Positions 3,839-31,767 of a DNA stretch of 32,000 nt are shown here, one piece after another. The DNA is from Paramicrosporidium saccamoebae KSL3 (taxonomy: Eukaryota > Fungi > Cryptomycota). Position 1 is the first letter of the stretch, and each line of letters opens with the position of its first letter. Location of the stretch: the NCBI GenBank assembly GCA_002794465.1, contig MTSL01000072.1, positions 50,035 to 82,034 of the forward strand, given 5' to 3'. Position numbers and translations under genes: made by a program. The notes beneath the pieces were generated by a model, which saw nothing but the letters and a program-made list of their open reading frames with translations, had not been told where the DNA came from and ran no database searches.

Positions 3839-4270
3839 ATGCTCCGCTGGTTCAGTTCAATGGCCGATACGCTACCCGCAAAGACATTCAGAGTGCGCAG
3901 TTTTAGGCCTCGTCTTGTCGACCCCGTAGAGATACAGACGAAAATTGACCGTACTCTTATAAAATAGTGCTCACGAGGTAGAATTGCCATACTTTGTGGA
4001 GCGGACAAAGCTCGGTCGAAACCTTCCCGTGTACATTCACGTCCGGAAACAACATCCAGAAACAGTAGTGCGTCGCATTTATGGAAATATTAGGGTATGT
4101 CTCATCTGAACGTTACAATATTGCTATAGGTGCTGGCAGACGAAATCAAAGCGCTTCTAGAAATAAGGAAGCCTTCGGATTTTGATGTGCGTGAAGATTT
4201 GTCGCACATTATTATCAAAGGGAGTCACCAGACAAAGCTACGAAAATTTTTAACAAAGAAGGGATTCTGA
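3839..4270 (+). CDS. IMG2: Mitochondrial large-subunit ribosomal protein mL49 (Img2/MRPL49), 121 aa, 3 exons; not in the ORF track
   Basis: Exons 3839-3950, 3982-4094 and 4130-4270; introns of 31 and 35 nt. Product has an Arg-rich presequence-like start, then LPYFVERTKLGRNLPVY...VVRRIYGNI...IIIKGSHQTKLRKFLTKKGF, matching mL49 motifs and the GF terminus. Confidence 0.85.
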
Positions 4271-5360: not shown

Positions 5361-5680
5361 GCTGGATCCCAACTCTTAAGTCCCGGTTGGATTTTTAATC
5401 TCGGCTGGATCCCCCAAAGTCCCAGCTTGATTATCCAAAGTCCCGACTTGATTCTCCAACGTTCCGACTTGATTCTCCAAAGTCCCGACTTGATTCTCCA
5501 AAGTTCCGGCTTGATTCTCCAGAGTCCCGACTCGATTCTCCAGTCCTGACTTGATTCTCCAGAGTTCCGACTCGATTTTCCAGAGTTCCAACTGGATACT
5601 CACCCTCAGCGACTGGATTCCCACTCTTAGCAACTGGATTGCCACTCCTAGTGACTGGATTCTTGCCCTCAGCAACTAGG
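5361..5680. repeat. 21-bp minisatellite of about 15 units in two sub-families (GATTCTCCAAAGTCCCGACTT-like and GATTCCCACTCTTAGCAACTG-like)
   Basis: A GAT anchor recurs every 21 nt from about 5407 to 5678, with one 19-nt unit near 5533-5552 and degenerate units toward the BUB3 start. Confidence 0.92.
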
Positions 5681-5759
5681 TCCTACAATCTTCGTTCTAA
5701 CCAGTTCCAAGCATAAGTTTTATTTAATCCTCACGAAAGACAACACTGATTACTAATCA

Positions 5760-7331: not shown

Positions 7332-8465
7332 ATGCTAAGCTTTTTAATTTCGCTTCGCATATTTTACACCCTGCTTGCGACATCCGTCCTGGCTGCCGGC
7401 ATCCTCCTGGTATCCTACCAGCGCGAGCGCCAGAACTTGATTCTGCGTTCGTGCTGCCTAGTAGTGCTGGTTATGTATGGCGCTATCCTGGCGGGACATA
7501 TCAACCACCAAGGGCTGGACCAGGACGACGCCTTTTGCCAGTCGCAAGCAGTCTTTCTCAACTACTGTTACATTTGCATACATGCACACACCTGCTTTAT
7601 GATGCTGAACAACTGCTACGTGGCCATGGGATGGAAGATACGCTTCTTTGAGCAGCACGTTGACCGGGAGTCAACTCTTGTGCTCCTCTCCTACACCATT
7701 CCGCTGCTGTATGTTGCATTCTTGGCCTTCAAGATGGCCAATGAGCCAGACTCTATTGCTATTTTGCCGGGTTCGTTTTTCTGCAGCATAGCAAGACCAA
7801 GGCTCACTCTTCAAACACTATGGTTTATCCTATTCTCGGTTCCGGGAAGTGCGCTTTCAGTATTCCTGCTGTACCAGACATGGAGGGCGCGCCAAAGGAC
7901 GCTGGTTTATGGAAGTACGACCCAGCTGACCCTGCCGTATCTGATTCGACTAACGATATCAACGTTTGTTTATATTTGCCTATCGTTTGGATCGTTCATT
8001 CCGCTACTCGTCATCTCAGACTTTGATCCAGAATGGCTACCGCCATCCGAGTTTGCCCCGGAGCCACACTTGCGGTCACCTTGGTTGAATCCGACAATGT
8101 GCATGGTACGCTCAGAGGATATTGGAATCCGGTACTATGCAAACATGATGTGTCCAGGTGTCTTGTCATATTTCCCTACATATGTTGGTTTGGCATTCTT
8201 CCTCATGTACGGCTTTGGAGCACATGCTCGTTCCTCATACCGCCATTTTGTGAATAGGTATTTGTGTCAGACGAAACGGAGAAACTCGACCCTCCCCCTG
8301 ATGGATACAGTTAATGGACAGTCCAGCATGGCCAGCATACCGGAAGAAGCGCCAACAGAAGCACCCTCGCCCGTGGGGTTGCATGAATGGAAAGAGGAAT
8401 TTCGCTGGTCCGTTGATTCTTCCGAAGCTCACCAATCAACTGCCGAGAGCTCGCCAGTGGATTGA
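7332..8465 (+). CDS. Seven-transmembrane GPCR-like receptor (class B / cAMP-receptor / frizzled-like fold), 377 aa
   Basis: First ATG at 7332. About seven hydrophobic segments, TM3-entry Cys (AFCQSQAVFLNY), ECL2 Cys (SFFCSI), a TM7 end FFLMYGF and a polar C-tail with KRRNST. Confidence 0.72.
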   Translation: MLSFLISLRIFYTLLATSVLAAGILLVSYQRERQNLILRSCCLVVLVMYGAILAGHINHQGLDQDDAFCQSQAVFLNYCYICIHAHTCFMMLNNCYVAMGWKIRFFEQHVDRESTLVLLSYTIPLLYVAFLAFKMANEPDSIAILPGSFFCSIARPRLTLQTLWFILFSVPGSALSVFLLYQTWRARQRTLVYGSTTQLTLPYLIRLTISTFVYICLSFGSFIPLLVISDFDPEWLPPSEFAPEPHLRSPWLNPTMCMVRSEDIGIRYYANMMCPGVLSYFPTYVGLAFFLMYGFGAHARSSYRHFVNRYLCQTKRRNSTLPLMDTVNGQSSMASIPEEAPTEAPSPVGLHEWKEEFRWSVDSSEAHQSTAESSPVD

Positions 8466-8553
8466 CTAGTTAGTTAGTGGGTCTACTAGTGAGTTGACTA
8501 GTTAGCTAATGGGTTCACCAGAGAGTTGACTAGAGTCTACCAGTGGATTAACT
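8451..8553. repeat. 32-bp imperfect tandem repeat beginning inside the GPCR stop region (two full and two partial units)
   Basis: tcgccagtggattgactagttagttagtgggt / ctactagtgagttgactagttagctaatgggt / tcaccagagagttgactagagt / ctaccagtggattaact. Confidence 0.8.
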
Positions 8554-8883
8554 CACGAATCCACCCGGCTTTTCGAGCTCACCAAGCTTCTATCAATAGC
8601 GGATTATTTTGGTGGAACTGAAACACCGCACCACATCCCCCATAAATATTGGGTATAATTCACACATAGAACAATAATATAGACTGTACATTTGTTCGCA
8701 TTATGGGAAAGAAACGACGGAATACATCCAACTAACCACCACCAATGGGAAGCGTTTGAGGTTGGCGGGAAATTGCGAATGGGCGGGATAAGAGGGCCTG
8801 GCATTGGAGGGGATAAATTGCCAGCACTTCTCTTGAAAGGAACTGCAGTTGCCCATTGTATTTGTATCTGAAAAAAGCCATCC

Positions 8884-10224: not shown

Positions 10225-10490
10225 GTCGGAAGTATTAAGTTGTTCAAATCCAAATAAATAATCTCTATCGATCCTACGAGTTGCAACTGTAAAGCGTGGG
10301 TACATTTAGTCTTATTTGTAAGCTGTAGTTTTGGGTGTGGATGTTTCGTTTATCATCCATGCTAGAGCTATAGGATTTCTCTCGAGCCGCCTGCATATAG
10401 ACATGCGGTCAGCTGATTGGTCAGTGGCATTCCTTTGTTGCTTCACAGACGGCCTTGTCGCTAGCAAAGGGCATTGCTCACGTTGCCCAA

Positions 10491-11315: not shown

Positions 11316-11390
11316 TGTGCGATTATATTACTCGTTTATAAAATTTACTATACAACTGAAAGACCCTGACATTTTACCAGGGTGTGCATA

Positions 11391-12539
11391 ATGAGCAAGG
11401 GAAAAAGGATTGCTCAAAAAAAGAGCTTTCTTGACTGTCTCGAGGCTAGCATAGACAAGCTAGAGACCGAACAGAGCGAAAAAGTACCGAAAAGGGAACG
11501 CTCCAAAAAGGTTACGTTTGATAGTCGTATCCATAAGCGTGGTTTCTTAAAAGACCAGCCTGCATCTGCCTTTGAAGAGGATGGGGAGGAGAGTGATGGT
11601 GAGGAGAATGATGAGGAGAGTAGTGGTGAGAGCGCTGGTGAATATGAAGGGTTTGAAAGCGCGTCTGACGAACAAGAGGGTGAAGAGCAAAGCGAAGACG
11701 AAGAACAAGAGGGTGAAGAGCAAAGTGAGGATGAAGAACAGGATGATTTTGATGCGCTTTCTCCTGCAGAACAGTTAAAAATGCTCATGATGCCTGTCGA
11801 AGAAGGAGAAGAAGACGCTGACTTGGACTATGCCGAAGAATATGATGAAGACGAAGAGGATGATGAAGACGAAGAGGATGATGAAGATGAAGACGAAGAA
11901 GGGTTAGAATACGATACTGACGAACCTCAACAGGACCTGAAAAAGCCAAAAAAGCGTCTTTTATCTTTGGATGATGATGACGAGGACGAGGAAGCTGTAA
12001 AATCAACTTTTGAAAAGCAACAAGAGCGTCTTCGAAAGACAATATCCGCGTTTGAGGAAGAGAACATTTCAGAGAAGCCATGGATGCTCCGTGGTGAGGT
12101 TAACGCCACTAGTCGCCCTGTCAACTCACTACTGGAGCAGGATTTAGACTTTGAACACGCAAGCAGAGCCGCCCCAATTATAACAGAAGAGGTTACCGAG
12201 TCCATCGAGTCGCTCATTAAGCAGCGAGTCAAGGACCAGGCGTGGGATGATCCGGAGCGAAAAGTAAAGAACACTGTGACACAAGGTAGGAAGCTGCCCG
12301 AGTTGGAAACGGAAAAGAGCGGAAAATCGCTGAGTCAGGTTTACGAAGATGAACTTGTCCAACCCAAGACGAGTGTCACTGTGGATGAACCCACGAAAAA
12401 GTCTCACGATGCAATTACAGTTTTGTTTAATAAGATTTGTCGGAAATTGGATGCACTTTCGCAGCACAAATTTACGCCGCGTGCATATTCACTTGAAGAT
12501 GTTCAGCTAAAGACGAGTAAAGTTCCTAAACACAAATAA
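11391..12539 (+). CDS. MPP10: U3 snoRNP / SSU processome protein Mpp10, N-terminal and central part; the 3' end of this segment is uncertain
   Basis: Acidic tract, then EKPWMLRGEVNATSRPVNSLLEQDLDF, IKQRVKDQAWDD, KSLSQVYEDE and KLDALSQHKFTP. Confidence 0.9.
   Translation: MSKGKRIAQKKSFLDCLEASIDKLETEQSEKVPKRERSKKVTFDSRIHKRGFLKDQPASAFEEDGEESDGEENDEESSGESAGEYEGFESASDEQEGEEQSEDEEQEGEEQSEDEEQDDFDALSPAEQLKMLMMPVEEGEEDADLDYAEEYDEDEEDDEDEEDDEDEDEEGLEYDTDEPQQDLKKPKKRLLSLDDDDEDEEAVKSTFEKQQERLRKTISAFEEENISEKPWMLRGEVNATSRPVNSLLEQDLDFEHASRAAPIITEEVTESIESLIKQRVKDQAWDDPERKVKNTVTQGRKLPELETEKSGKSLSQVYEDELVQPKTSVTVDEPTKKSHDAITVLFNKICRKLDALSQHKFTPRAYSLEDVQLKTSKVPKHK
11670..11899 (+). repeat. Coding acidic repeats in MPP10: a 33-bp duplication (EQEGEEQSEDE x2) and 18-bp DEDEED units
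   Basis: Direct reading of 11670-11735 and about 11843-11899. Confidence 0.75.
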
Positions 12540-12747
12540 ATGCATAGATGCGAGATGGCACATCTACAGATCCGGGTCTGTGAAGCAGTACCTGCCCATG
12601 ATTGGTGATCCCACGAACCGGTATACTGAGCGTATTAGTCCATAGTGGCACCTTTAATAAAGATATACTCTCGCGTAATAGCAGGGTCCTGTTTACAACA
12701 TTCCGCAATAGACTACTCCGTTTGGGCCTGCAGGGGGTGACACTCAG

Positions 12748-13086
12748 ATGGTTCGAAGCATCTCAGCTAGTATGCTGGAGGAGGCAACTCCCCTGCACAT
12801 GTCCTCTGCCACTCGTCTTGCCCCACAGGAGCACTACCGGCCGTCCAAGAACATCCCGCAAGCCACTACAGAAATGTCGCGTACCGACCGAAACCGCAAG
12901 CGTCGACAGACAAAGCTGGTGAAGAAAATGCAGAGACAGCAGAGTGATGAGAGGGCCAGGACAGCAGCGAGACTAGATCCAAAGAAGAAGGGCTCACTGG
13001 AGAAGAGGGAGGCTCTCAAGACGCTGTCGAAGAATAAGAATGTCACAATCCTGCCACAGGTCAGAAAAGATAGACGAAATAGATAA
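12748..13086 (+). CDS. MPP10: Mpp10 C-terminal segment, either the last exon or a separate gene
   Basis: SMLEEATPLHMSSATRLAPQEHY corresponds to the Mpp10 ISME..P...S....LAPQE motif; also EMSRTDRNRKRR and ALKTLSKNKNVTIL. Confidence 0.8.
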   Translation: MVRSISASMLEEATPLHMSSATRLAPQEHYRPSKNIPQATTEMSRTDRNRKRRQTKLVKKMQRQQSDERARTAARLDPKKKGSLEKREALKTLSKNKNVTILPQVRKDRRNR

Positions 13087-13213
13087 AGGCCTGATCTAGT
13101 ATTGTAGCAAATCTTGAGAGCTATTATTGCTTCACCAGACACGTGTAACCGATCATTAGTTAGTACACAATGAATCGGAAAGCTCAATAAATAAGTCTAG
13201 ACAGACGGTTTAT

Positions 13214-16200
13214 TTAGGCATCCGCAGAGGAGAGACGAGAAACCATTTGGGCTATGACTTGCCGGGCATCCTCAATAGCTTTTGGTGTACCACGAAGTTT
13301 AACCTGATCCGAGTTTTCATCCCTTTTTGGCACGAAAATGCTGCATCCAGTCTCCCCTTTTACTTTCTCAAGGTTCATTCCAGAACGTCCAATAATCGCG
13401 CCATGATATTGAAGCGGAACCGTCATTATTTGCGTGGATGCTTTCAATGTTGCCTCCATATCCTTGACAAAAGCGAGGGCCTTTTCCAGTTCACCAGCGT
13501 CTCCCAGGATCTGGATCCCATTTGGCTTGCCTTGGACTTTGAGATTAGGGAATTTCTTTGTCACGGCCGCCACTATTTCCTGACGATCTTCAAGAGAAAC
13601 TGGCACCACTTGTGGTTCTCTTACATAGTGCAAGAGCTCAGCCTTTGCCAGCTTGACATTCTCAATGGCGCCTTCGACAGTGACAAGAGTGTCTGCGGGA
13701 TTCTCCTTCTTTGGAAAGTGAATACTAACACTAAATGTGGTGCGGATTCTCTGGACGTTTGCTCCACCACGTCCCATGATCTCGCCGTGGAATCGGGTAG
13801 GAATATCTACAGTTTCTGTCATGAATTCTGTGGAAAATAGCTCGGACAGCTCCTTTATGGCAGAAGGAAGGACTTTCCTTTTCCCGCGGATGACAAATTC
13901 TTCTTTAGAGGGCACAGTAGAAATGCCAATTTCGAGTGCTTCATATTTGGTGATTAGAGCACGGAATGCGGCATTCCCAATTCCTGTCAATAGTTTAAAC
14001 TTTTCAGTTCCTGGTGAAATGGTCTCGCTCACTTTACAATTATCCACCAATTCTGCCACGAGCTTCTTGGCGGTTTCGATGCCCTCCAGAGTACCCTCAA
14101 AGGTCATGGTATAGTTTTCCTCTCTGTCGTGGTCTTTGTTGAGGTCAATGTTAGTGTCAGTATCAAATCTCAGACTGGAAATAACCGCTCCCTTTCGACC
14201 CAAAATAGCGGGGACAGCATAGTTGGGAACAGTGATCGTTTCCCGGTGACGATGGCTTTTTTCATAGGCGATAAACTCGTGAATCTCGGCAATAGCCTCT
14301 TGGAAGTTTGAACGTGGGCCCACAATTTTAATGTCGCTCTTTACCTCCTCAGTAGAGGTTGGAAGGACAAGCGTAATGTCGTACTTTTGAGCAAAATGTT
14401 TCGCATTCTTCCCGTTTTTGCCAATCAGCGCTCCGTGGAATTCAGGCTCAACTTGGATAATTTCACTGCCCCGATCGGCAATTTTTTGTAGAAACTGGAC
14501 AACACTAACTTTGAATGACTCGACATCCTTTTTGAGACCTTGGAACGTCAATGTCCTGGAATCGACTTCCAAATTTCTAATTCCATGGTCACGCGCAAAG
14601 TTACTAAGAGACCGAACAATCTTACCATCAGAGTTGGTGGCAGCGCTAAACGTCTCGGGCGTTAGGGCAATATTCCCAGAGTAGCTGTGCATGATAGCAT
14701 CGTGTCTAATCGTTTCTGCCTCTTTCAAAATTTCACACTGTGCCTCAGCGACCTCTTTGGATGGCCCTTGCAATCGAACGGAATCCTTCTCAAAGGTGAT
14801 CAGGATTGAAGGATATCGCTCCCTAGTCTTTTTGATATTGGTACCCTTGGCACCAATCAGTGCACCGTGGAACTTGCTATCAACATGGACTTCTGCGACT
14901 CGAAGATCTGCCAAATTGGCAATCTTCTTTGTGATATGCTCCTTGGCCGCACTAATGACCTGGGGGGAAGTACCGGCAATTACGACATTCTCACTTTCCC
15001 TCTCGGTGATAATGATCTCGACACCAAATTCAGCCTCAATCTGTTGGAGATTGTGTCCCTGCTTCCCAATAACATGTTTAATATATTCCGCATCCACAGA
15101 AATGCGCTCAAACTGGTAGGCGCTCAGTGCTTCAATGGCGCCCTTCAGCTCCATTACTGAGACCATCACTTCGGCCTTCTTTCCATCCAGAACAAAGCCA
15201 GCGTCGCTCTGGTGAATATGCACGGAATACTTCTTTTCCAGGTCACGGATCAAAGAGCGAGATTGATGAATAAGCAAAGACTTGATCTGCTCGTTTGCAT
15301 GGACAACCTGACTGTCCACCGCACTCGTCTTGTCCAAAATCCCCCGCACCCCTTTAAGCAATGCATCATCCTTTCCGTAAACAGTAATCGAGTCGGATGG
15401 GTTATCTGGGGGAGGCACAGAGATATAACAGCCAGTCTCCTCCTCCAGCGCGTAAAGTGTCTCGGCCTTGGGCCCCACAAGGAAACGATGCAAGGGCTTT
15501 GGCACCTGGGTTGATACCGTCTTGATCGTTTTTCTAACCTTTTCAGTGCGCTCCTCCAATTCTCTCATGGCTGCAACCACATTTGCACGATTGCCAGAAA
15601 AGGCTAGCGTCGCCAGTTCAGGATCCTTCAGATCGGTCAAAATCTTGACAGTGTGCTTAGCAGCAAAGTCGCGAATCGTGGGTGTAATTCTGCCACTAGT
15701 GGAGCATTCAAAGACAAAGGGTATCAGATGACGCTCCAGTTTAAAGCTACTACTCATCTTATTGAGTTTGTCGTGTATCAACGCCTCGATGTACTGCTTT
15801 GCCAGCGAGATGCCCTCAAAATCACCCGCAATTGAGACCTGCCCACTGTATGGCCTATGCACAGTTATGCGGGTGGAGGTGTCACTCATCAAGGCGGCAA
15901 TTTTACGCCCTTGTGGGCCAATCACTAGTCCCAAACACTCCTCTGGCACATCCAAGGCGATAGTGGCCGTCTCTGCTAGTCTGGACCATATTTTCCGCCT
16001 CGCCGCCATAATCTCCCCCTCCGTAGTGCCTTTGATTACAAAAGTGCAGACCTGCGTTTGTCCTGAGCGCGAAGCATCAATGACCGTATCCGTCTCGCGG
16101 CCAATTTGCTGACAGAGCTCAGCCAGGTTTGGGCCCTCACGGCGTCTTTGATGCTCGTAGGGCATCTGAAAAACCTGCGTGATGCCAGAAGGACGAACCA

Positions 16201-19243: not shown

Positions 19244-22200
19244 TTACAGTTTATTATTGCTTCGCAGAGAAAGACTCGATTCCGACCGGGTCAATGCAGA
19301 ATATTCTGATGACAGCGTGCTGGACATGGATTCGGCGTCTGCGGGTCTAGGACGCGGCGTCGTGAATGTCGCCAAATCACTCTTAACCTCATCGGCACTT
19401 GCGTGTCGACTATGAGTCTTCTTCCTTCCCGCCTGGACCGTACGGATTGTATCAGAGAAGCTTCTAAAGAACTGGTCCAGAATTAAAAAGAGCTCTTCAG
19501 GCCGCCTGCCGTTGGTCTCCTCTCCCAGATATTCGGCGGTCTTATGCCATGACTCTTTGAGAAGCGTGGCCAATTTACCGAGCCGATCTAGCTCAGTGGC
19601 TGCGCGGGCGATAAACACTTTTTGGGCACCGCGGAAACTCTCAACCTGGCTTGGCTCATCATCAGCGAGCTGCAACTCGCAGATTTTTCGATACGCAGCG
19701 GCAATCTCCTCAATGTGGGTCAGAATCGCAGCCGTTTCCCAATGACGAACGACACTTAAGTCTGCAAAATCCGCTGGTAAATTTAAGACTTCTTGATTAC
19801 GTTCTTCGAGGGACGTGATGAGATATTGAAGGAGATTGGTCTTTTTATCGGCGCTCTTTACATCCTGCAACTTTATCAAACTTTCCATCTTGAATCCAAG
19901 CGCCTTTCCTCGGACTCGCACATGGGCAGCAACATGGCCATAATCATAATTGGCGAGGTTTCCCAGCTCAAGGACAGCCCTAAGAAGAGTCTTTAAGGAG
20001 GGCGATTCGCGGATCTTCGTCAAAAGACCAATGATGAGCATCAGTTTGTTAGTGGCAGTTTCAATCTCGCTATCAAATTGTCTTTCAAATATCAATGCAT
20101 CTACCATCCATGTAAGGTGCGGTTCTTTGGCCGCCAGAAGCATAAACTTTTCTGCCGTTCCCAACTCACTGACAGGACCTTTGTACAAAAGTAAAGCGGG
20201 GCGCTCCTCTATGGTCGGCATCAAAGGCCTCATTGTCAGAAGATCGTCCAAGGAAAGAATCGTCATTTGACGTGAGGTGATTGCCTCGATGATTTCAACA
20301 TCAGAAAGACGCTTATAGAACCTGGAGAGACCAATGCCCACATTATTAACCCTCCGAAGATCGAGGATACTCACCACTGGTTTTGCTGGATTCTTTCCAG
20401 TCTGCTCCAGATTAACACTTTTCTTCTCTCCGGCGTCGATGCAGAACAATTCTTCAAATTTGTGAACATCCAACATTTGCGGATCATAGTCGGGAAGCTG
20501 TTCCAACAATTCTAGCCACACGGTATTTCGAAGTCTGTGCTTGTCCTTGAGCTCTTCCCAATGAAGCTTATTCCTAATCTTGGGCTTTTGCAAACCATCA
20601 CTCGTCCCTTCATTATCGCTTGGACTAACAGATCTGCTAGGACCCTTGATTCCCGGAGGTGGCGGAGGGGGTGGTGCTTTGCCTGGGAGCGGTGGAGGTG
20701 GTGGTGGCGGGGGGACATTTCCTGTAATTGGCGGTATCTTGTTCTTGCCAGGCGGAGGAGGGGGCGGAGGAGGAGGAGGGGGTGGCGGAGGAGGAGCTGT
20801 TCCTGAAATTGATAGTGGTAGTGGTGGTGGTGGTGGAGGCGGAGGAGGTTGAACAGGTGCCCCTCCTGGCTTCAGAGATGCCATTTCTGGTTCCAGAGGC
20901 ACCACTTTTGGGATTGGGCACGAAGAAACCATTTCATTTTCTGATGCATCAGTTATCGTAGGAGGTATCGTCATTTCAGGGCTCAGTGGAGATGTCTTTT
21001 GTGCGACATCAACTATCGATCGTTTGACGCTTGATTCTATCGACGCAACAGGTGTAAGTGGTGTAGCAGATAACCCACATTCTTCTGCTGCTATTTGTCT
21101 TGTAACATCGCTCAGAGCACTTCCAGCATCCGATTCGACCTCTTCAAAGATTTCCTTAACCGCAAATCTTTGTTGTCGCCTTTCGGCACCTTTATCTTCC
21201 TTTCTAATTGGTGATTCCGGCTCACGAGAATCTGCACAAACGTTAGCAATCGTGTTCGAGGTAGAATCAACTCTTTGGTGGCCTGTACGCATCTTGTCGT
21301 ACTTTAACTTGCCCAAGCTGATGAGCTCCTTGTCTAGCGAGTCATAAAAGGGCGTCTTTGTCAGCAACGACAGTAGTTCATGGGCTGAATGAATGTCATT
21401 ATTCCTCAGTTGCAAGGCCAGTCTTGAGAAAAACTTTCGATGCCCCTGGAGCTCTAATGGCTGGATCAAGAGGGGATCAGGGCGCACAGCATGAAATTGC
21501 GACAGTTTCAGTAAACTCTTGGCTCTACTCCGAATAGTCACATTTTCGTAAGACACTTGCTTCAATTCTTCCTCCATCGGGGTGACAATAATGTCCACTG
21601 AAAATTCTGTTGAAAATCGTGAAACGTTTTGCCCCTTCAGGCCACCCGTTGCAGGCACCGGACTTGAGAAGGGAATTTCCATATCGCTAGGTCTCAACCG
21701 AATCAGGCCTGGAGCAACAAAACCAGTATTAAATACCAAGTTAAGGATTGTCATGTTCTGAGCAGATTGTTCATTGTGATGATAAATCCTAATCTGGACA
21801 TCTCGATCAAGTACAAGATTCTCCAGCCGAAAAACCACATGATTCAGGTCTTTAAGGACCAGCGGATTGTAATCCTGGATGGGTAATTGTTGAAGAGTCA
21901 TCGATATCTGCAATTCTTTGACAAGCTCATCATCTTCAAAAGTATCTGCCTGGACATCCTCGGCTGATGACTTTCGTGATTTTGATGCCACTGACAGTGT
22001 CCTCATTGAGGAACTGATTCCCGCGTCAATTTCAGCTTGCCGAACCCGACTGGAATAGATCAGTTTCCCATTCTGGTAGACTTCAATTCCTGGATTGCAG
22101 CTCCCGTCACCATCAAAGTTTGGCACCGTGTTCAGGATGACTTGATGGAGCTGCAGCGGCAGCGGATTGGGAACACGCCCATTAAGGATGAGAACATCAT

Positions 22201-22780
22201 TAAAATATCTGAGATACCGGCGTAGTGTGACAGTGACCCACGCTGAACCACCGGGACTCCGCTTCTGCACAAAATATTCAAAGCTTTCATAAGTCGAGTC
22301 GAAAAGCTCACAATACCGCAGAAAACAGGCCACAGCCAATCCTGAGCGTCCCAACCCATTCTTGCATTGGACGACGGCAACATGCTGTGTGTCCATTGAG
22401 AGCCAGGCAATCATTGAGCGACAGACATTGAACAGCGTCTTTAGTGAGGGCGACAAGGCGCGACTGAGTGAAAAGTTCATGACTTGATTCCGAAATGGCG
22501 TAGTGTCATACTGTGTGTCTGGTGAACCCAAATTCCAAATGACATAATTCCTGCCATACCGGGTGTTAAGAAAGGTGGCCATATCGCTGACATTGTTACG
22601 GTGTGAGCCTTTATCAGTGCGATGACTCCAGCAACGTCCCATCACCAGCATTCGGTCCGAAATGCGCGTCACGTCCAAGTCGCAGTTCAGCTGGGTGTCA
22701 GTCTCGGCAAGGAAGGCTTCGAGGTTTTCGGTTGTCTGGCTGAAGCCAGTGCGTCCGGAGAGGTCGAGTTGGCTGCCCAT
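19244..22780 (-). CDS. Formin with N-terminal PTEN-like phosphatase and C2 domains, FH1 polyproline region and FH2 domain
   Basis: First ATG at 22780; the ORF is open from 22882. LDVTRISDRMLVMG, VAVVQCKNGLGRSG, YLRYF and C2-like NLVFNTGF; four poly-Pro tracts; FH2 motifs KLHWEEL, ILDLRRVNNVGIGL, VLELGN, GFKMESLIKLQDVKS and LLQYL. Confidence 0.9.
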   Translation of the reverse strand: MGSQLDLSGRTGFSQTTENLEAFLAETDTQLNCDLDVTRISDRMLVMGRCWSHRTDKGSHRNNVSDMATFLNTRYGRNYVIWNLGSPDTQYDTTPFRNQVMNFSLSRALSPSLKTLFNVCRSMIAWLSMDTQHVAVVQCKNGLGRSGLAVACFLRYCELFDSTYESFEYFVQKRSPGGSAWVTVTLRRYLRYFNDVLILNGRVPNPLPLQLHQVILNTVPNFDGDGSCNPGIEVYQNGKLIYSSRVRQAEIDAGISSSMRTLSVASKSRKSSAEDVQADTFEDDELVKELQISMTLQQLPIQDYNPLVLKDLNHVVFRLENLVLDRDVQIRIYHHNEQSAQNMTILNLVFNTGFVAPGLIRLRPSDMEIPFSSPVPATGGLKGQNVSRFSTEFSVDIIVTPMEEELKQVSYENVTIRSRAKSLLKLSQFHAVRPDPLLIQPLELQGHRKFFSRLALQLRNNDIHSAHELLSLLTKTPFYDSLDKELISLGKLKYDKMRTGHQRVDSTSNTIANVCADSREPESPIRKEDKGAERRQQRFAVKEIFEEVESDAGSALSDVTRQIAAEECGLSATPLTPVASIESSVKRSIVDVAQKTSPLSPEMTIPPTITDASENEMVSSCPIPKVVPLEPEMASLKPGGAPVQPPPPPPPPPLPLSISGTAPPPPPPPPPPPPPPPGKNKIPPITGNVPPPPPPPPLPGKAPPPPPPPGIKGPSRSVSPSDNEGTSDGLQKPKIRNKLHWEELKDKHRLRNTVWLELLEQLPDYDPQMLDVHKFEELFCIDAGEKKSVNLEQTGKNPAKPVVSILDLRRVNNVGIGLSRFYKRLSDVEIIEAITSRQMTILSLDDLLTMRPLMPTIEERPALLLYKGPVSELGTAEKFMLLAAKEPHLTWMVDALIFERQFDSEIETATNKLMLIIGLLTKIRESPSLKTLLRAVLELGNLANYDYGHVAAHVRVRGKALGFKMESLIKLQDVKSADKKTNLLQYLITSLEERNQEVLNLPADFADLSVVRHWETAAILTHIEEIAAAYRKICELQLADDEPSQVESFRGAQKVFIARAATELDRLGKLATLLKESWHKTAEYLGEETNGRRPEELFLILDQFFRSFSDTIRTVQAGRKKTHSRHASADEVKSDLATFTTPRPRPADAESMSSTLSSEYSALTRSESSLSLRSNNKL

Positions 22781-22958
22781 GAGACTACTGGACAGTTGCG
22801 AGAGAGACGAGGAGAGACGATGAAGAAACGCAGACACTGTCACTGCGTGCAGGCAGGTTGGAGGCCCAACCCTAGTGGACAAATCAACGCGCTTGTATTT
22901 GAATGGCCAACACAGGATCGTCTATATAGGCCTGTAACTATTTACTAATATGTCCCTA

Positions 22959-27400: not shown

Positions 27401-30400
27401 CTAATTAGATGAGGGCGAATCAGGAGGCGGAGAGTGTTCTTCCAAAAGAATAGGGAGCGGAAGCTGTTTTGGCGTCACTGCCGATTCTATTGGTGACTGC
27501 ATTCCCACTGACGATCCCACCGAGTTGGACCGCATCTTGTGTCGTCCAGCGAGTGGTTTGGGATACACCTAGAAATAAAGACTAGTAACAAATCATACCA
27601 CGTAGAGATGCTCGGGATTGGGCAGGCCTTTGAGATGAGTCAGACCCAGATCGAAAATTGCAATATCAGGTCGCTCCTTTTCTGACATCCTCATATACAT
27701 GTCCCGGATGGTGTCGGTAATGTGAATTTGTCCTCCATCGGCAAGTGCACTCACCCTCGCCGCAATAATCATGTGAACGCCATGGTAATCCATCCGACGG
27801 GCAACCTTGTCTTCCTCATCATCGGTCATTCCGAAATGGATTCCCATTCTGATAGAGAGTCCTCGATAGAGGAGACTGCCATCAGAGTCGTAGACAGGGG
27901 CGGCAACGGGAGAGTTGAGAATCTCACGGGGCCAATCATTCTCAATAAACTGCTGCTGGACAGCCACACAGAATCGGAGGGCATTGATTCCGGACTGGAA
28001 GGCCACTACAAAGGCGTCGCCTTCAGTTTTGACCTCATATCCTCCATGGATCCTCATTAGTCGACGCATACTGTTATTATGCTGTCTAGTGGCCACTCTC
28101 ATGGCGTTGGGAAGCATCGACCAAAGTTTGGTGGATTCTTTAATGTCGGTAAATACAAATGCACAGGGAGGCTTTGGAGGAGGGATCTCATCCTCCAAAC
28201 GCGACAGAACCTGATCATCGAACATGTCACGACGGAAGGCATTGCGTCTCCGTTCCGCCACTGCTGCTCCACCTTCGTGTTGGGTGGTGATGCCACGGAA
28301 ATCCACAAACATAATCTTCATGCTGTCTGCCACCCCGCGAGCAATTGCCATGTCTCGAAGCTTCTGTACTGCAACATCCGGATCCGATCTCTCTTTCCGG
28401 GCCACATCCACCGCCATCTGATAAGACATTACCTGCCAGAACGAATTGGTCGCAATGAGAACAAACTCGTCTGTGGGACCCAGCAACACTTCATTAATAC
28501 TTGGATTGGCGTTCACGTAGGGAAGCAAATGGTGGTTTCCAAATGCCCTTGTTATAGGCATGTCGCCTTCAACTTGGCCCTGTAGCGAAATGAAGCCACC
28601 GAGAACCCTAATTCTCTTCTGTTCCCCTCTGGCCCAGGGATGATGTTTGGTTGTCAGAACGTATGCTGTTCCTTCACGTGAAAGCACAGCCATTGTGTCG
28701 CCGACATTGGCAATGAGCAGTTGATTTTCCAAGAGATATAAAAGACAAGCTGTCGACCATCTGCACATGTCTATTGGTTGGGTGCTCAGATCGCGGTTGG
28801 TGGACAAGAAGGCCCTTCTGATTGCTGTGGAGAATTCTTCACCTTGACGCAACCGTCGCAATTCTAGCTTGAGATTATCCGCGAGGGTATCGTTGAGGTA
28901 GGAGGAGACAAAGTCGTGGCCACGACCATCAAACAATCCAACTAAATGATCCTTCTCCTGGCCCATATATGTGCGTATCACAAATTCAGCCAAATCGAAA
29001 ATGATCTCTCTCCCACAGTACTCGGCCACGGCAACCTTTAGTCCTCCTTGTTCTTCAGACATGCGTGTTTGCAGATTGGTCATGTCGTCGGGAAGACATA
29101 ACGGTGACACTTGGACATTGGTGAGATCCAAGAGACGGAGCTTGTTCATTGACTTGAAATCTGTCAGCGTCCTCTCGAGCGGAGTGTTGGATTGCTGTCC
29201 AAAATTTGCCTTGATCTCTAGTTTCCGGTTGTTGGCCAAATTCAAGTACTGGAGAGCCGAGTTAAAGTTCCAGTTCCAGTCGTACGGCCAATTTGAAATA
29301 TTGTACTTTAGGACATTGGACTGCACGTCAAATACGGCGAGCTCCTCGTTCTTTCCTAGCTCTGCTGGCAGATTTGCCAGCTTATTGCCATTAATAAACA
29401 GCATCCTGACGGAACGACAGCGGTCCACAGCTTCGGGGAAGGAGGTGAGTCCATTTCCGGACAGATACAGTTCAACAAGCTTTGGCATGTCTCGAAGAGT
29501 ATCGTCCAAGTCAAATAGTCGGTTATACGAAAGATTCAGCACCCGGAGTTCTGTGAATAGCTCAATGACGTTTCCTACCGTGTCGGCAAGACGGTTATCA
29601 GCAGCCAAGAATTCTTCCAGACATTGTCTAAGAGGAGGCGCCTCTAATCCATAAGGTGGCTCTGGAAAAGAGGTCAGAAAGTTGGAGCTCACATTCAGCA
29701 TCCGTAATGCGGGAGCTTTCCAAATATCAGCAGTGATAGTGCGAATATTGTTTGTGTGGAGTTGCAGATACGATAGCTTTTTAAGCTGGGCAAAGTGCAA
29801 ATTAATCTCGACAATGCTATTGCTGTGAGCAGTCAGACACTCCAAATTGGTAAGCTGATTAATCGATTGGGGCAATTTGGTGAGCTCGTTCTGCTGAATT
29901 CCCAGAATTTCCAAGTTGCTCATGTACGTGAAAATGTCATCTGGGAGAGATACAATCTTGCTGCAGGACAGGTTTAGTCGTTTGAGACCGTACATGAAAT
30001 CAGTAACATTCATCCCAGTTAGGGCGTTGTTGGCACAACTGAGGCTGTTGACATGCGGCCAACGAGGACAGGAAATGTCAGACAGATTATTGTGGTCGAG
30101 GGATATTTCGTAAAGTGAGGTAATCTTGTCTAAACCCTCGGTCTTATACAGCAAGTTTCCACGAATGTCCAGTTGTCTCAGATGAAGCAGCTGCTGTATA
30201 CTCGGATTCAACGATTCGATTGCATTCCCAACAAGGATCAAGCTGCGTAAAAAGCTGAGGTTGGTTATTTCTTCTGGAACCGTAGTGATTCTATTGAATG
30301 ATGCATTAAGTTCTCGGAGATCCTTCATTCCCCAAATGCAGGGACTCAACTCGGCAAGATAATTACTAGACACATCGAGACACCTCAACGTCTTTAGTTC

Positions 30401-31767
30401 GGCCAAACAATCTGGCATGGCTTTGATACGATTACAAGAGACATTGAGGTGGGTGAGACGCGGTAGCTGGATCAAAGCGGCCAGCGCATCTCCCTCCAGA
30501 TAATTTGACGAGAGATCAAGATGAGTGATGCTTGGACAGATCAATATGGAAGATGGAATTGTAGTCAGCAAATTCCCAATCAACCTCAATAATCGCAGGC
30601 TTTCTAGCATTTCAAAGAGATCATCAGGCAGCGTCAACAAGGTATTTCGCGACAAATCAATGTACTCTAATGTCTTGGTATTCAAAAACATTGATGTTGG
30701 CATCACTGATAGATTGACGTCGGCAAGATATGCAGAGCGCTCAGTTATCCTGGCACGACCATTTCCAGAGATGGACATTCGGGGACGAGGAGAGGCAGCA
30801 GATTTGTTGGATGGATTCTCAGTGAAATCCTCTGATCGAGGGGGAGCAGGCGGATACTCCCGAAAGATGAACCGACAACAATACGAATGGTCCTCGCGTG
30901 CAATCTTTGTCAAATGATCAGTATCCTCATAGCCGATAGTCATCAAATAGCCCCGAAGCATCTGCACCGGCTTGTCGCCGTGTTCTAACAATCTCTCAGT
31001 GTTCCGATGCACAACATACAGGCGGAACCGACTCATATCTCGTTGAGAGGTAAACTTGTGCATCATTATGGTGCACAGTTGGGCGGCCGTAACATCTAGT
31101 TCGCAAGATACGGTTACATATGTATAGCCCGAACTGGCCACAACTTTGGACACGACGCCGTCTGCATTTTCGACCGGCTTAAAGACGCGGATAGCCCACA
31201 TATTCTCCAAATCGGTACCCTTATCCGTTGAGGATCTCCTAGGGCGGGGATTGACAGCATATGTCTCGCGACTCATAAAGCCCCAAGAACTGGGCGATTG
31301 CCAGCTGTAATCTTCCTTATCGCCCGAGGGTGGGCTGGTGCTGCTTGACTCGCCTTTTTCGCGCTGCTCAAAAAAGTCCTGGATGTCGCGGCGCATCTCG
31401 GCCTGTCTGGGATTGTCGCATTCCTCCACTGCGGACGCCAGTGGCGGGCATACCGGAAGAAACTACCAATCAGTCACACCAAACTAATTAATACCTCAGT
31501 CTCTGGCGACCTATTACCTTCACTCTTTGTCGTGTCTTCCTTGCGAATTTTCCCAAAAAAAGGAAACCTCCACTTGCGACTCTTACCGGCAGAATCTGTG
31601 GGCGAGTTGCCACTCTCTCGACGTTCCACTGGCGGCGGCTCAGGAACCGCCTCTGGAATCACCGAATACTTTCGTCGCGCAAGTGCTGGGTCGCTAGAGC
31701 TTAAAGGCGAGCTGTATAGGCCAGGAGTAGAGAATTTTCGTTGAGAGGACGATGGTCTGTCATCCAT
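27401..31767 (-). CDS. CYR1: Fungal-type adenylate cyclase (Ras-association, LRR, PP2C-like and class III cyclase domains), about 1434 aa, 3 exons
   Basis: Exons 31767-31495, 31462-27599 and 27568-27401; introns of 32 and 30 nt. LRR array, GLFDGRG/ANVGD PP2C-like region, catalytic FVFTDIK, YEVKTEGDAF, RMGIHFG and MDY.G....AARV. Confidence 0.93.

Follow-up and report, generated by a model that had tools for sequence, protein, structure and literature searches.

The Mpp10 locus

The 32,000 nucleotides (nt) analysed here, referred to as the window, belong to contig MTSL01000072.1 (positions 50,035 to 82,034) of the cryptomycotan fungus Paramicrosporidium saccamoebae KSL3 and consist of compact eukaryotic DNA with a G+C content of about 47–50%, long open reading frames (ORFs) and very short spacers. 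They include the locus for Mpp10 (yeast Mpp10, human MPHOSPH10), the scaffold of the small-subunit (SSU) processome that binds Imp3, Imp4, Utp3/Sas10 and uS7. This protein is essential, universally conserved in the SSU processome and normally made as one chain. Its conserved sequence is distributed here over two adjacent ORFs of the same strand, the N-part and the C-part (Table 1), and the comparison with relatives indicates that MPP10 has probably undergone gene fission in this organism and in a clade of related lineages.

The N-part frame, starting with the ATG at 11391, reads through ...KFTPRAYSLEDVQLKT, whose last codon ends at 12515, and then through the tail SKVPKHK to a TAA. The C-part lies in the +1 frame relative to the N-part; it is open from 12712, has its ATG at 12748 and stops at 13084–13086. 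The original prediction for this stretch had described an interrupted Mpp10 sequence, and the match to the family does stop at 12515 and resume after 12748. The coordinates given there were all correct: a GTAAAG at 12517, an AG at 12547, the TAG at 12643–12645 that closes the exon opened behind a 31-nt intron-like element, the AATAAA that follows it at 12656–12661, the ATG at 12748 and a CTCAG ending at 12766.

Table 1. Features of the Mpp10 locus and spliceosomal introns of the window (window coordinates)
Feature	Position	Strand	Remarks
Mpp10 N-part gene	11391..12539	+	coding sequence with stop, 382 amino acids (aa); acidic region and stretches aligning to the Imp4- and Imp3-binding regions
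Lysine-rich tail SKVPKHK	12516..12536	+	7 codons, following the conserved Mpp10 residues of the N-part
AAATAAA, poly(A)-signal-like	12534..12540	+	overlaps the N-part TAA (12537-12539)
31-nt intron-like element GTAAAG...AAATGCATAG	12517..12547	+	status uncertain
Spacer between N-part and C-part genes	12540..12747	.	208 nt
TAATAAAG	12655..12662	+	possible additional poly(A) signal, N-part transcript
Conserved block AATAGAC...GCCTGCAGGGGGTG	12707..12739	+	lies 9-41 nt before the C-part start
Mpp10 C-part gene	12748..13086	+	coding sequence with stop, 112 aa, begins MVRSISASMLEEATP; basic C-terminal region
AATAAA	13186..13191	+	about 100 nt past the C-part stop; read from sequence
Vigilin gene, 3' end, TAAATAAA	13209-13216	-	
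Local introns	31494-31463, 26376-26346, 26146-26116, 24889-24857, 16279-16249, 5239-5209, 4399-4362	-	
Local intron	8653-8682	+	

Both pieces belong to the Mpp10 family PF04006 (cut-off 29.9 bits). Residues 66–366 of the N-part match positions 195–455 of the 529-position profile (E 2.8e-62, 211.7 bits), and positions 470–527 are matched by residues 3–59 of the translation that begins at 12769 (E 2.5e-12, 46.8 bits), so that a single clean break, with nothing missing between the pieces, accounts for both matches. In alignments to structures of the Protein Data Bank the N-part extends to about residue 463 of yeast Mpp10, 519 of the human protein and 641 of the Chaetomium thermophilum protein. 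The C-part aligns to yeast residues 475–569 and human residues 527–638. The break falls at about yeast 468–474 or human 526, with the ...F.PK.. block on its N-terminal side and the ..A[IL].MEE block on its C-terminal side. Residues 2–8 of the C-part (VRSISAS) align to human 527–533 (VSNLPAI) with HMMER, and the bases from the ATG to the acceptor at 12766 thus encode homologous residues.

The Mpp10 of C. thermophilum has been divided into an N-terminal Utp3-binding domain, an acidic loop, an Imp4-binding region (475–562), an Imp3-binding region (612–643) and a basic C-terminal region (673–785) thought to carry an import signal, and has been called a scaffold made of linear interaction motifs (PMC5558966). 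Residues 190–288 of the N-part align to the C. thermophilum fragment that was co-crystallised with Imp4 (5o9e_B, E 1.1e-17), and the N-part contains the motif KPWMLRGEV with the conserved W of the Imp4-binding helix. Its alignment reaches C. thermophilum residue 641, in the Imp3-binding region. By these alignments, the region aligned to Imp3 binding ends just ahead of the cut, and the ..MEE.. block and the basic C-terminal region come after it.

The two pieces together resemble a canonical Mpp10 in their family membership, in the retained order of acidic region, Imp4-binding helix, Imp3-binding region and basic C-terminal region, and in that no canonical residue is missing at the junction. They differ from it in being encoded by two ORFs, in the lysine-rich tail gained by the N-part, in a C-part that starts with Met where the human protein has Val (V526, extrapolated from the alignment) and in the shortness of the stretch before the Pfam match (about 65 residues).

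Distribution of the split among relatives

A search with the N-part returned about ten close relatives, with 42–58% identity in the best local BLASTP alignment; these come from assemblies of metagenomes or read archives, and one more from an NCBI assembly. Fifteen loci were fetched and comprised 12 distinct sequences, which with the window make 13 loci from independent assemblies and 11 lineages. All 13 share the layout of the window, in line with the fission that had been one of the readings offered by the original prediction. In each of them the N-part ORF stops 4–32 codons past a conserved ...F.PR.Y....K[TPSL] block, and the C-part ORF starts with an ATG at the identical alignment column (M-[VGIA]-[RIV]...) in each of the 11 loci, the window among them, that extend far enough; the ATG noted for the downstream part stands in this column. 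The start is followed by a G (ATGG) in nine of these 11 loci and is directly preceded by CC in several (CCATGG). The tails of the N-parts, 4–32 residues long, are rich in K, S, T, P, A and G in every locus and end in a K in 10 of 13. Stops and a frame change separate the ORFs in every member of the clade, so that no single ORF holds all Mpp10 regions, and neither the protein homology search nor the C-part profile search found a fused Mpp10 among the relatives.

Between the stop of the N-part and the ATG of the C-part lie 65–249 nt, the shortest spacer (65 nt) being that of locus L006. Unrelated tandem genes of the same contigs (MMM1–Mpp10, Nrap–Mpp10 and tubulin–MMM1) are 65–227 nt apart, five of the seven pairs by 65–104 nt, which shows that spacers of 65–249 nt give room for a gene boundary. 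Downstream of the C-part, vigilin is found on the opposite strand in eight relatives, as in the window. The upstream neighbour of Mpp10 is Nrap in L001, L002, L004, L005 and L006 and MMM1 in the window; gene order around Mpp10 is partly retained at 40–70% protein identity, with vigilin downstream in the same five loci and the window.

When a profile of the C-part was compared with 1.84 billion cluster representatives, the best 14 matches were all short stand-alone ORFs, and full-length Mpp10 proteins appeared only from E ~1e-13. More distant clusters at 50% identity that reach the junction have a Met at the same column, either as the first residue or internally in an ORF called from further upstream. 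Short ORF fragments of other lineages cross the junction uninterrupted (...FHYTPKP...IISNLPAVTVEE...), as do the named full-length proteins.

A tree built on the conserved region of the N-part unites the 13 split sequences in a single clade (ultrafast bootstrap 99, Shimodaira–Hasegawa approximate likelihood-ratio test 97), and one change therefore suffices to explain the split; the wider placement of the clade in this tree is unreliable. The comparison with MPP10 of relatives that had been proposed thus reveals a shared split, and the mis-assembly raised as a possible cause is excluded by the presence of the same split in 13 independent assemblies. Two scans for further loci in metagenome_contigs, based on the C-part alignment and on the single protein respectively, gave 600 pattern matches each and no confirmed locus. 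The relatives stem from many environmental read sets, and the lineage is widespread yet poorly sampled.

Conservation and selection around the break

The closest relative, locus L015, allows a comparison site by site. Its C-part protein is 88% identical to that of the window, with synonymous changes in about 23% of the codons. Over the tail and stop of the N-part, 21 of 24 nt are identical, the frame and the stop are kept and the tail reads SKVSKHK; of the codon changes in the tail, one is synonymous and one non-synonymous. The 10 nt after the stop are identical throughout (10/10). Beyond them the spacer interior aligns no better than chance (107 identical columns, against 106 ± 3.2 after shuffling) and contains indels, and blastn and tblastx comparisons of the spacer with those of the relatives found similarity in only two short patches, in L015. 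Amid this diverged sequence, TAATAAAG is collinear and identical in L015 (999–1006). Positions 888–925 of L015 hold a GAGATGTG-type low-complexity run in the spacer, absent from the window and consistent with fast spacer turnover.

Conservation resumes in the block from about 41 to 9 nt before the C-part ATG, which may be the core promoter or the 5' leader of this gene, and the 7–10 nt adjoining the ATG are scrambled between the two loci. From the ATG onwards, 18 of the 19 nt at 12748–12766 are identical, and the sole change is synonymous in the frame of the ATG, while nearby neutral sequence has been randomised. In L015 an in-frame TGA stands immediately before the ATG. The conserved stretches are thus bounded by a stop codon and a start codon, and these boundaries do not match the proposed splice sites.

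Both halves show the mark of coding constraint. Between the window and L015, synonymous and non-synonymous codon changes number 43 and 8 in 190 codons of the N-part and 22 and 9 in the first 100 codons of the C-part; between L001 and L005, the corresponding figures are 56/23 and 31/8 for the two halves. Synonymous changes far outnumber non-synonymous ones in each case, which indicates purifying selection on both.

Signals at gene ends and gene starts

AAATAAA occurs 13 times in the window, where 4.8 copies are expected, and mostly at the 3' ends of genes. Sites at or near stops are 1403–1413, 5719–5725 (-), 10252–10258, 12534–12540 and 13209–13215 (-), and the motif also stands at the C-part ends of the loci; a TAGA(C)-type motif often follows a few bases downstream. 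AAATAAA, with the TAGA(C)-type motif, is probably the 3'-end signal of the clade. In 41-nt windows, A[AT]TAAA is present at the N-part stop in seven of 13 loci and at the C-part end in six of nine, against a background of two in 357 coding windows; windows from the remaining spacer contain it in two of 37 cases. The motif mostly overlaps the N-part stop, just as it does at the true terminal ends of the C-parts. For the C-part gene of the window, the AATAAA at 13186–13191 is a likely poly(A) signal, facing the signal that vigilin would use on the other strand.

Ten to 20 nt upstream of both ATGs stands a CAGGG(G)TG element, at 11378–11386 for the N-part and at 12731–12741 for the C-part, and the sole other copy in the window lies on the minus strand near 7373; it may be a start-proximal promoter motif. 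A CCAAT-box-like element had been proposed upstream of the C-part. It is only an ATTGG at 12601–12605, which gives CCAAT on the minus strand, and it falls within the inner part of the spacer, whose alignment to L015 is no better than random. The spacer contains four ATGs in the window, up to seven in other loci and none in L001, L005, L014 and L006; by a rough estimate, ATG depletion upstream of the C-part start shows a trend in the right direction that is not significant.

The layout of starts and stops throughout the clade, the features of a gene end and a gene start on either side of the spacer, and the purifying selection on both halves together support two adjacent genes. The unspliced version of the N-part, with a TAA at 12537–12539 overlapping an AATAAA, had been the last of three options in the original prediction and is the one that the comparative evidence favours.

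Alternative explanations

Splicing can be judged against eight convincing introns of the window, which are 30–38 nt long with a mode of 31 nt; each begins with GTA, and its 3' end reads T[AG]AT, about 3 nt and TAG. The element at 12517–12547 comes close to this pattern: it has the modal length, a GTA start and a TAG end, departs from the local branch and 3' pattern by one mismatch and is conserved in L015, as is, collinearly, the possible poly(A) signal at 12655. The two genes might then be expressed with an N-part mRNA that loses these 31 nt, always or as an alternative isoform, and ends in a 32-residue tail with its stop at 12643–12645 and its poly(A) signal at 12656. Against this, the exon that the splice would open is not conserved, L015 reaching a stop after nine codons in randomised sequence, whereas the unspliced SKVPKHK keeps its frame and stop there and is lysine-rich like the tails of the other lineages. 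The bases of the element are explained equally well as a coding tail, an AAATAAA and a cleavage site, and a TAGA-type motif also follows true terminal gene ends. The short intron predicted at this place thus survives as a plausible-looking element while its new terminal exon does not, and we regard splicing here as a minority possibility. If real, it would only give the N-part a different, non-conserved tail and would leave the two-gene conclusion unaffected. A model with two introns (12517–12547 and 12632–12662) was rejected, as it ends in the wrong frame when the sequence is read through.

A single gene with a long intron would encode a full-length Mpp10, the conserved ATG being merely internal or intronic. 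Two GT..AG pairs restore the frame in the window, 12517–12766 (250 nt, CTCAG end) and 12517–12733 (217 nt). Some observations do speak for such an arrangement, or at least weigh against two genes. The donor GTAAAG and the acceptor CTCAG are conserved and in phase in both the window and L015, and five lineages have a GTAAA[GT] close to where the N-part ORF ends, in different phases. In L006, a 32-nt element at 4170–4201 (GTCCCA...CCATAG) would fuse the two ORFs in frame through an open linker of 18 codons; in no other lineage could a short intron join them, and with a rough chance probability of 0.1–0.2 and 11 lineages inspected, this is probably a coincidence. The exact 382-aa N-part ORF is absent from the protein collection, and the homology search returned no near-identical N-part; the depositor's N-part model may be missing or merged with the neighbouring gene. 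Finally, no poly(A) tails were found at contig ends, all contigs being genomic.

A frame-compatible GT..AG pair joins the two Mpp10 ORFs in eight of 11 loci, but under the same rules such a pair is also found in five of seven unrelated adjacent gene pairs (MMM1–Mpp10, Nrap–Mpp10), and frame restoration therefore does not tell an intron from a gene boundary. Scanning the contigs of the relatives for GT..AG pairs without restriction gave too noisy a result for intron sizes to be read from it; unrelated neighbouring ORFs were easily 'joined'. The recurrent GTAAA[GT] can also come from Ser-Lys-stop or Lys-stop codons, and Ser-Lys-stop endings are written with other codons in L006 (TCT AAA TAA) and L008 (TCA AAG TAA). 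In L014, L006 and L010 there is no GT from the conserved block to the N-part stop, so that a GT–AG intron cannot be the general explanation. Nor is a donor–acceptor pair around a non-coding interior conserved across the relatives: these three loci have no GT in the tail, and 12748–12766 evolves like coding sequence.

The candidates themselves have GT..AG ends, as the local introns do. The 250-nt candidate, correctly described at the outset as several-fold longer than the introns of this DNA, has 6–8 times their length and lacks their T[AG]AT-N3-TAG 3' end, and the 217-nt candidate fits neither the local length nor the 3' motif. Use of the acceptor at 12766 would delete VRSISA, homologous to human 527–532, and would make intronic the 19 nt that evolve as coding sequence. 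The L015 equivalent of the acceptor at 12733 (CTGCAG) has been moved out of phase by a 1-nt indel, and a TGA abuts the ATG in this locus. Together with the failure to find the fused protein among relatives, these points disfavour the 250-nt intron proposed in the original prediction, and a long intron of either size is unlikely.

An equally low probability attaches to a single transcript that carries both ORFs, the C-part being translated by reinitiation or leaky scanning, or riding as an accidental passenger on read-through transcripts. Overlapping transcription does occur in compact genomes, and spacers as short as that of L006, or free of ATGs as in four loci, would suit it. The ATGs in the spacers of the window and other loci, the poly(A)-signal motif at the N-part stop, the conserved block just 5' of the C-part ATG and the equally tight spacing of unrelated genes on these contigs argue against it. 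Less probable still is that the halves are rejoined or co-expressed by means other than ordinary cis-splicing, for example through a clade-specific non-GT or otherwise unconventional intron, which would give full-length Mpp10 even in lineages without a GT donor, or through obligatory coupled translation from one transcript.

A non-coding RNA, such as a small nucleolar RNA (snoRNA), or a nested or mobile element within the insert, once suggested by its unusual length, can practically be set aside: the window yielded no Rfam family at gathering thresholds (the best weak matches over 12400–12900 at E <= 10 being C/D-box snoRNAs at E 1.4 and 9.1, far below gathering scores) and no tRNA, 12517–12766 folds no more stably than shuffled sequence on either strand (z = +1.02 and -0.44), blastn and tblastx against the window and all loci detected no repeat or conserved coding sequence in the spacer, nor any translated similarity to other spacers, and its interior is not conserved even in L015.

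Other features of the window

The exact 112-aa C-part protein has its own entry in NCBI nr and UniRef; the depositor's annotation thus treats the C-part as a gene of its own, which, the annotation being automatic, is weak evidence. Among the other genes of the window are MMM1, NCA2 and a mitochondrial E2 acyltransferase. A 1289-codon ORF at 27596–31462 (-) has the fungal-type adenylate cyclase architecture RA-LRR-PP2C-cyclase, and in a 1225-codon formin at 19247–22921 (-) a PTEN-type C2 domain precedes the FH2 domain. Tandem repeats occur at 5414–5677 (21-nt unit, 9 copies), within a minus-strand ORF region, at 8462–8533 (32-nt unit, 2.2 copies), from the stop codon of an ORF ending at 8465 onwards, and at 1669–1785 (51-nt unit, 2.3 copies), across the 3' end of the NCA2 ORF and into the sequence behind it. 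Among named alpha-tubulin matches of normal length (444–450 aa), the best are from Mucorales (83–84% identity), with animals at 82–84%; the alpha-tubulin of the metagenome relatives reaches 96% identity.

Proposed functioning and significance of a divided Mpp10

Gene fission is a known process in eukaryotes. The locus resembles other cases in its adjacent, collinear pieces on the same strand, each with its own start and stop and each under purifying selection. It differs in that the divided gene encodes an essential ribosome-assembly scaffold and that the division is fixed across a deep clade (40–70% protein identity). Full-text searches of the literature found no paper that names Mpp10 together with 'gene fission' and none that describes a split Mpp10. 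A split Mpp10 would be a new example of a known process, and as such it would change no general principle.

Under gene fission, the upstream gene would encode the acidic region and the regions aligned to Imp4 and Imp3 binding and end in its lysine-rich tail, with the stop inside a poly(A) signal, and the downstream gene, after the 208-nt spacer, would start at its own ATG and encode the basic C-terminal region. The two would be transcribed separately, and the two polypeptides would join the SSU processome independently, each through partners of its own, as may be expected of an extended scaffold of linear binding motifs. One could speculate that the lysine-rich tail, added to the N-part in every lineage, compensates for the lost basic region, for example in nuclear import.

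In the yeast particle, Mpp10 is an extended chain that runs from Bms1 via Imp4 and Imp3 to UtpB and helix 44, which its C-terminal part reaches, and Utp14 occupies different sites with two well-separated segments, a 'split structure' (bioRxiv 10.1101/175547). The example of Utp14 indicates that extended processome proteins operate as separate linear modules; Utp14 is one polypeptide, whereas the modules of Mpp10 would here be separate genes.

If MPP10 is indeed two genes in these organisms, an essential scaffold of the SSU processome naturally works as two subunits, and the tail of the first may replace a lost import signal. A stable clade with a two-gene Mpp10 would be a natural experiment, implying that the covalent linkage between the Imp4- and Imp3-binding part and the C-terminal part is dispensable, and the break would mark a tolerated split point at about yeast residue 470. 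In these genomes, gene prediction and orthology pipelines that do not recognise both ORFs will overlook Mpp10 or report it truncated.

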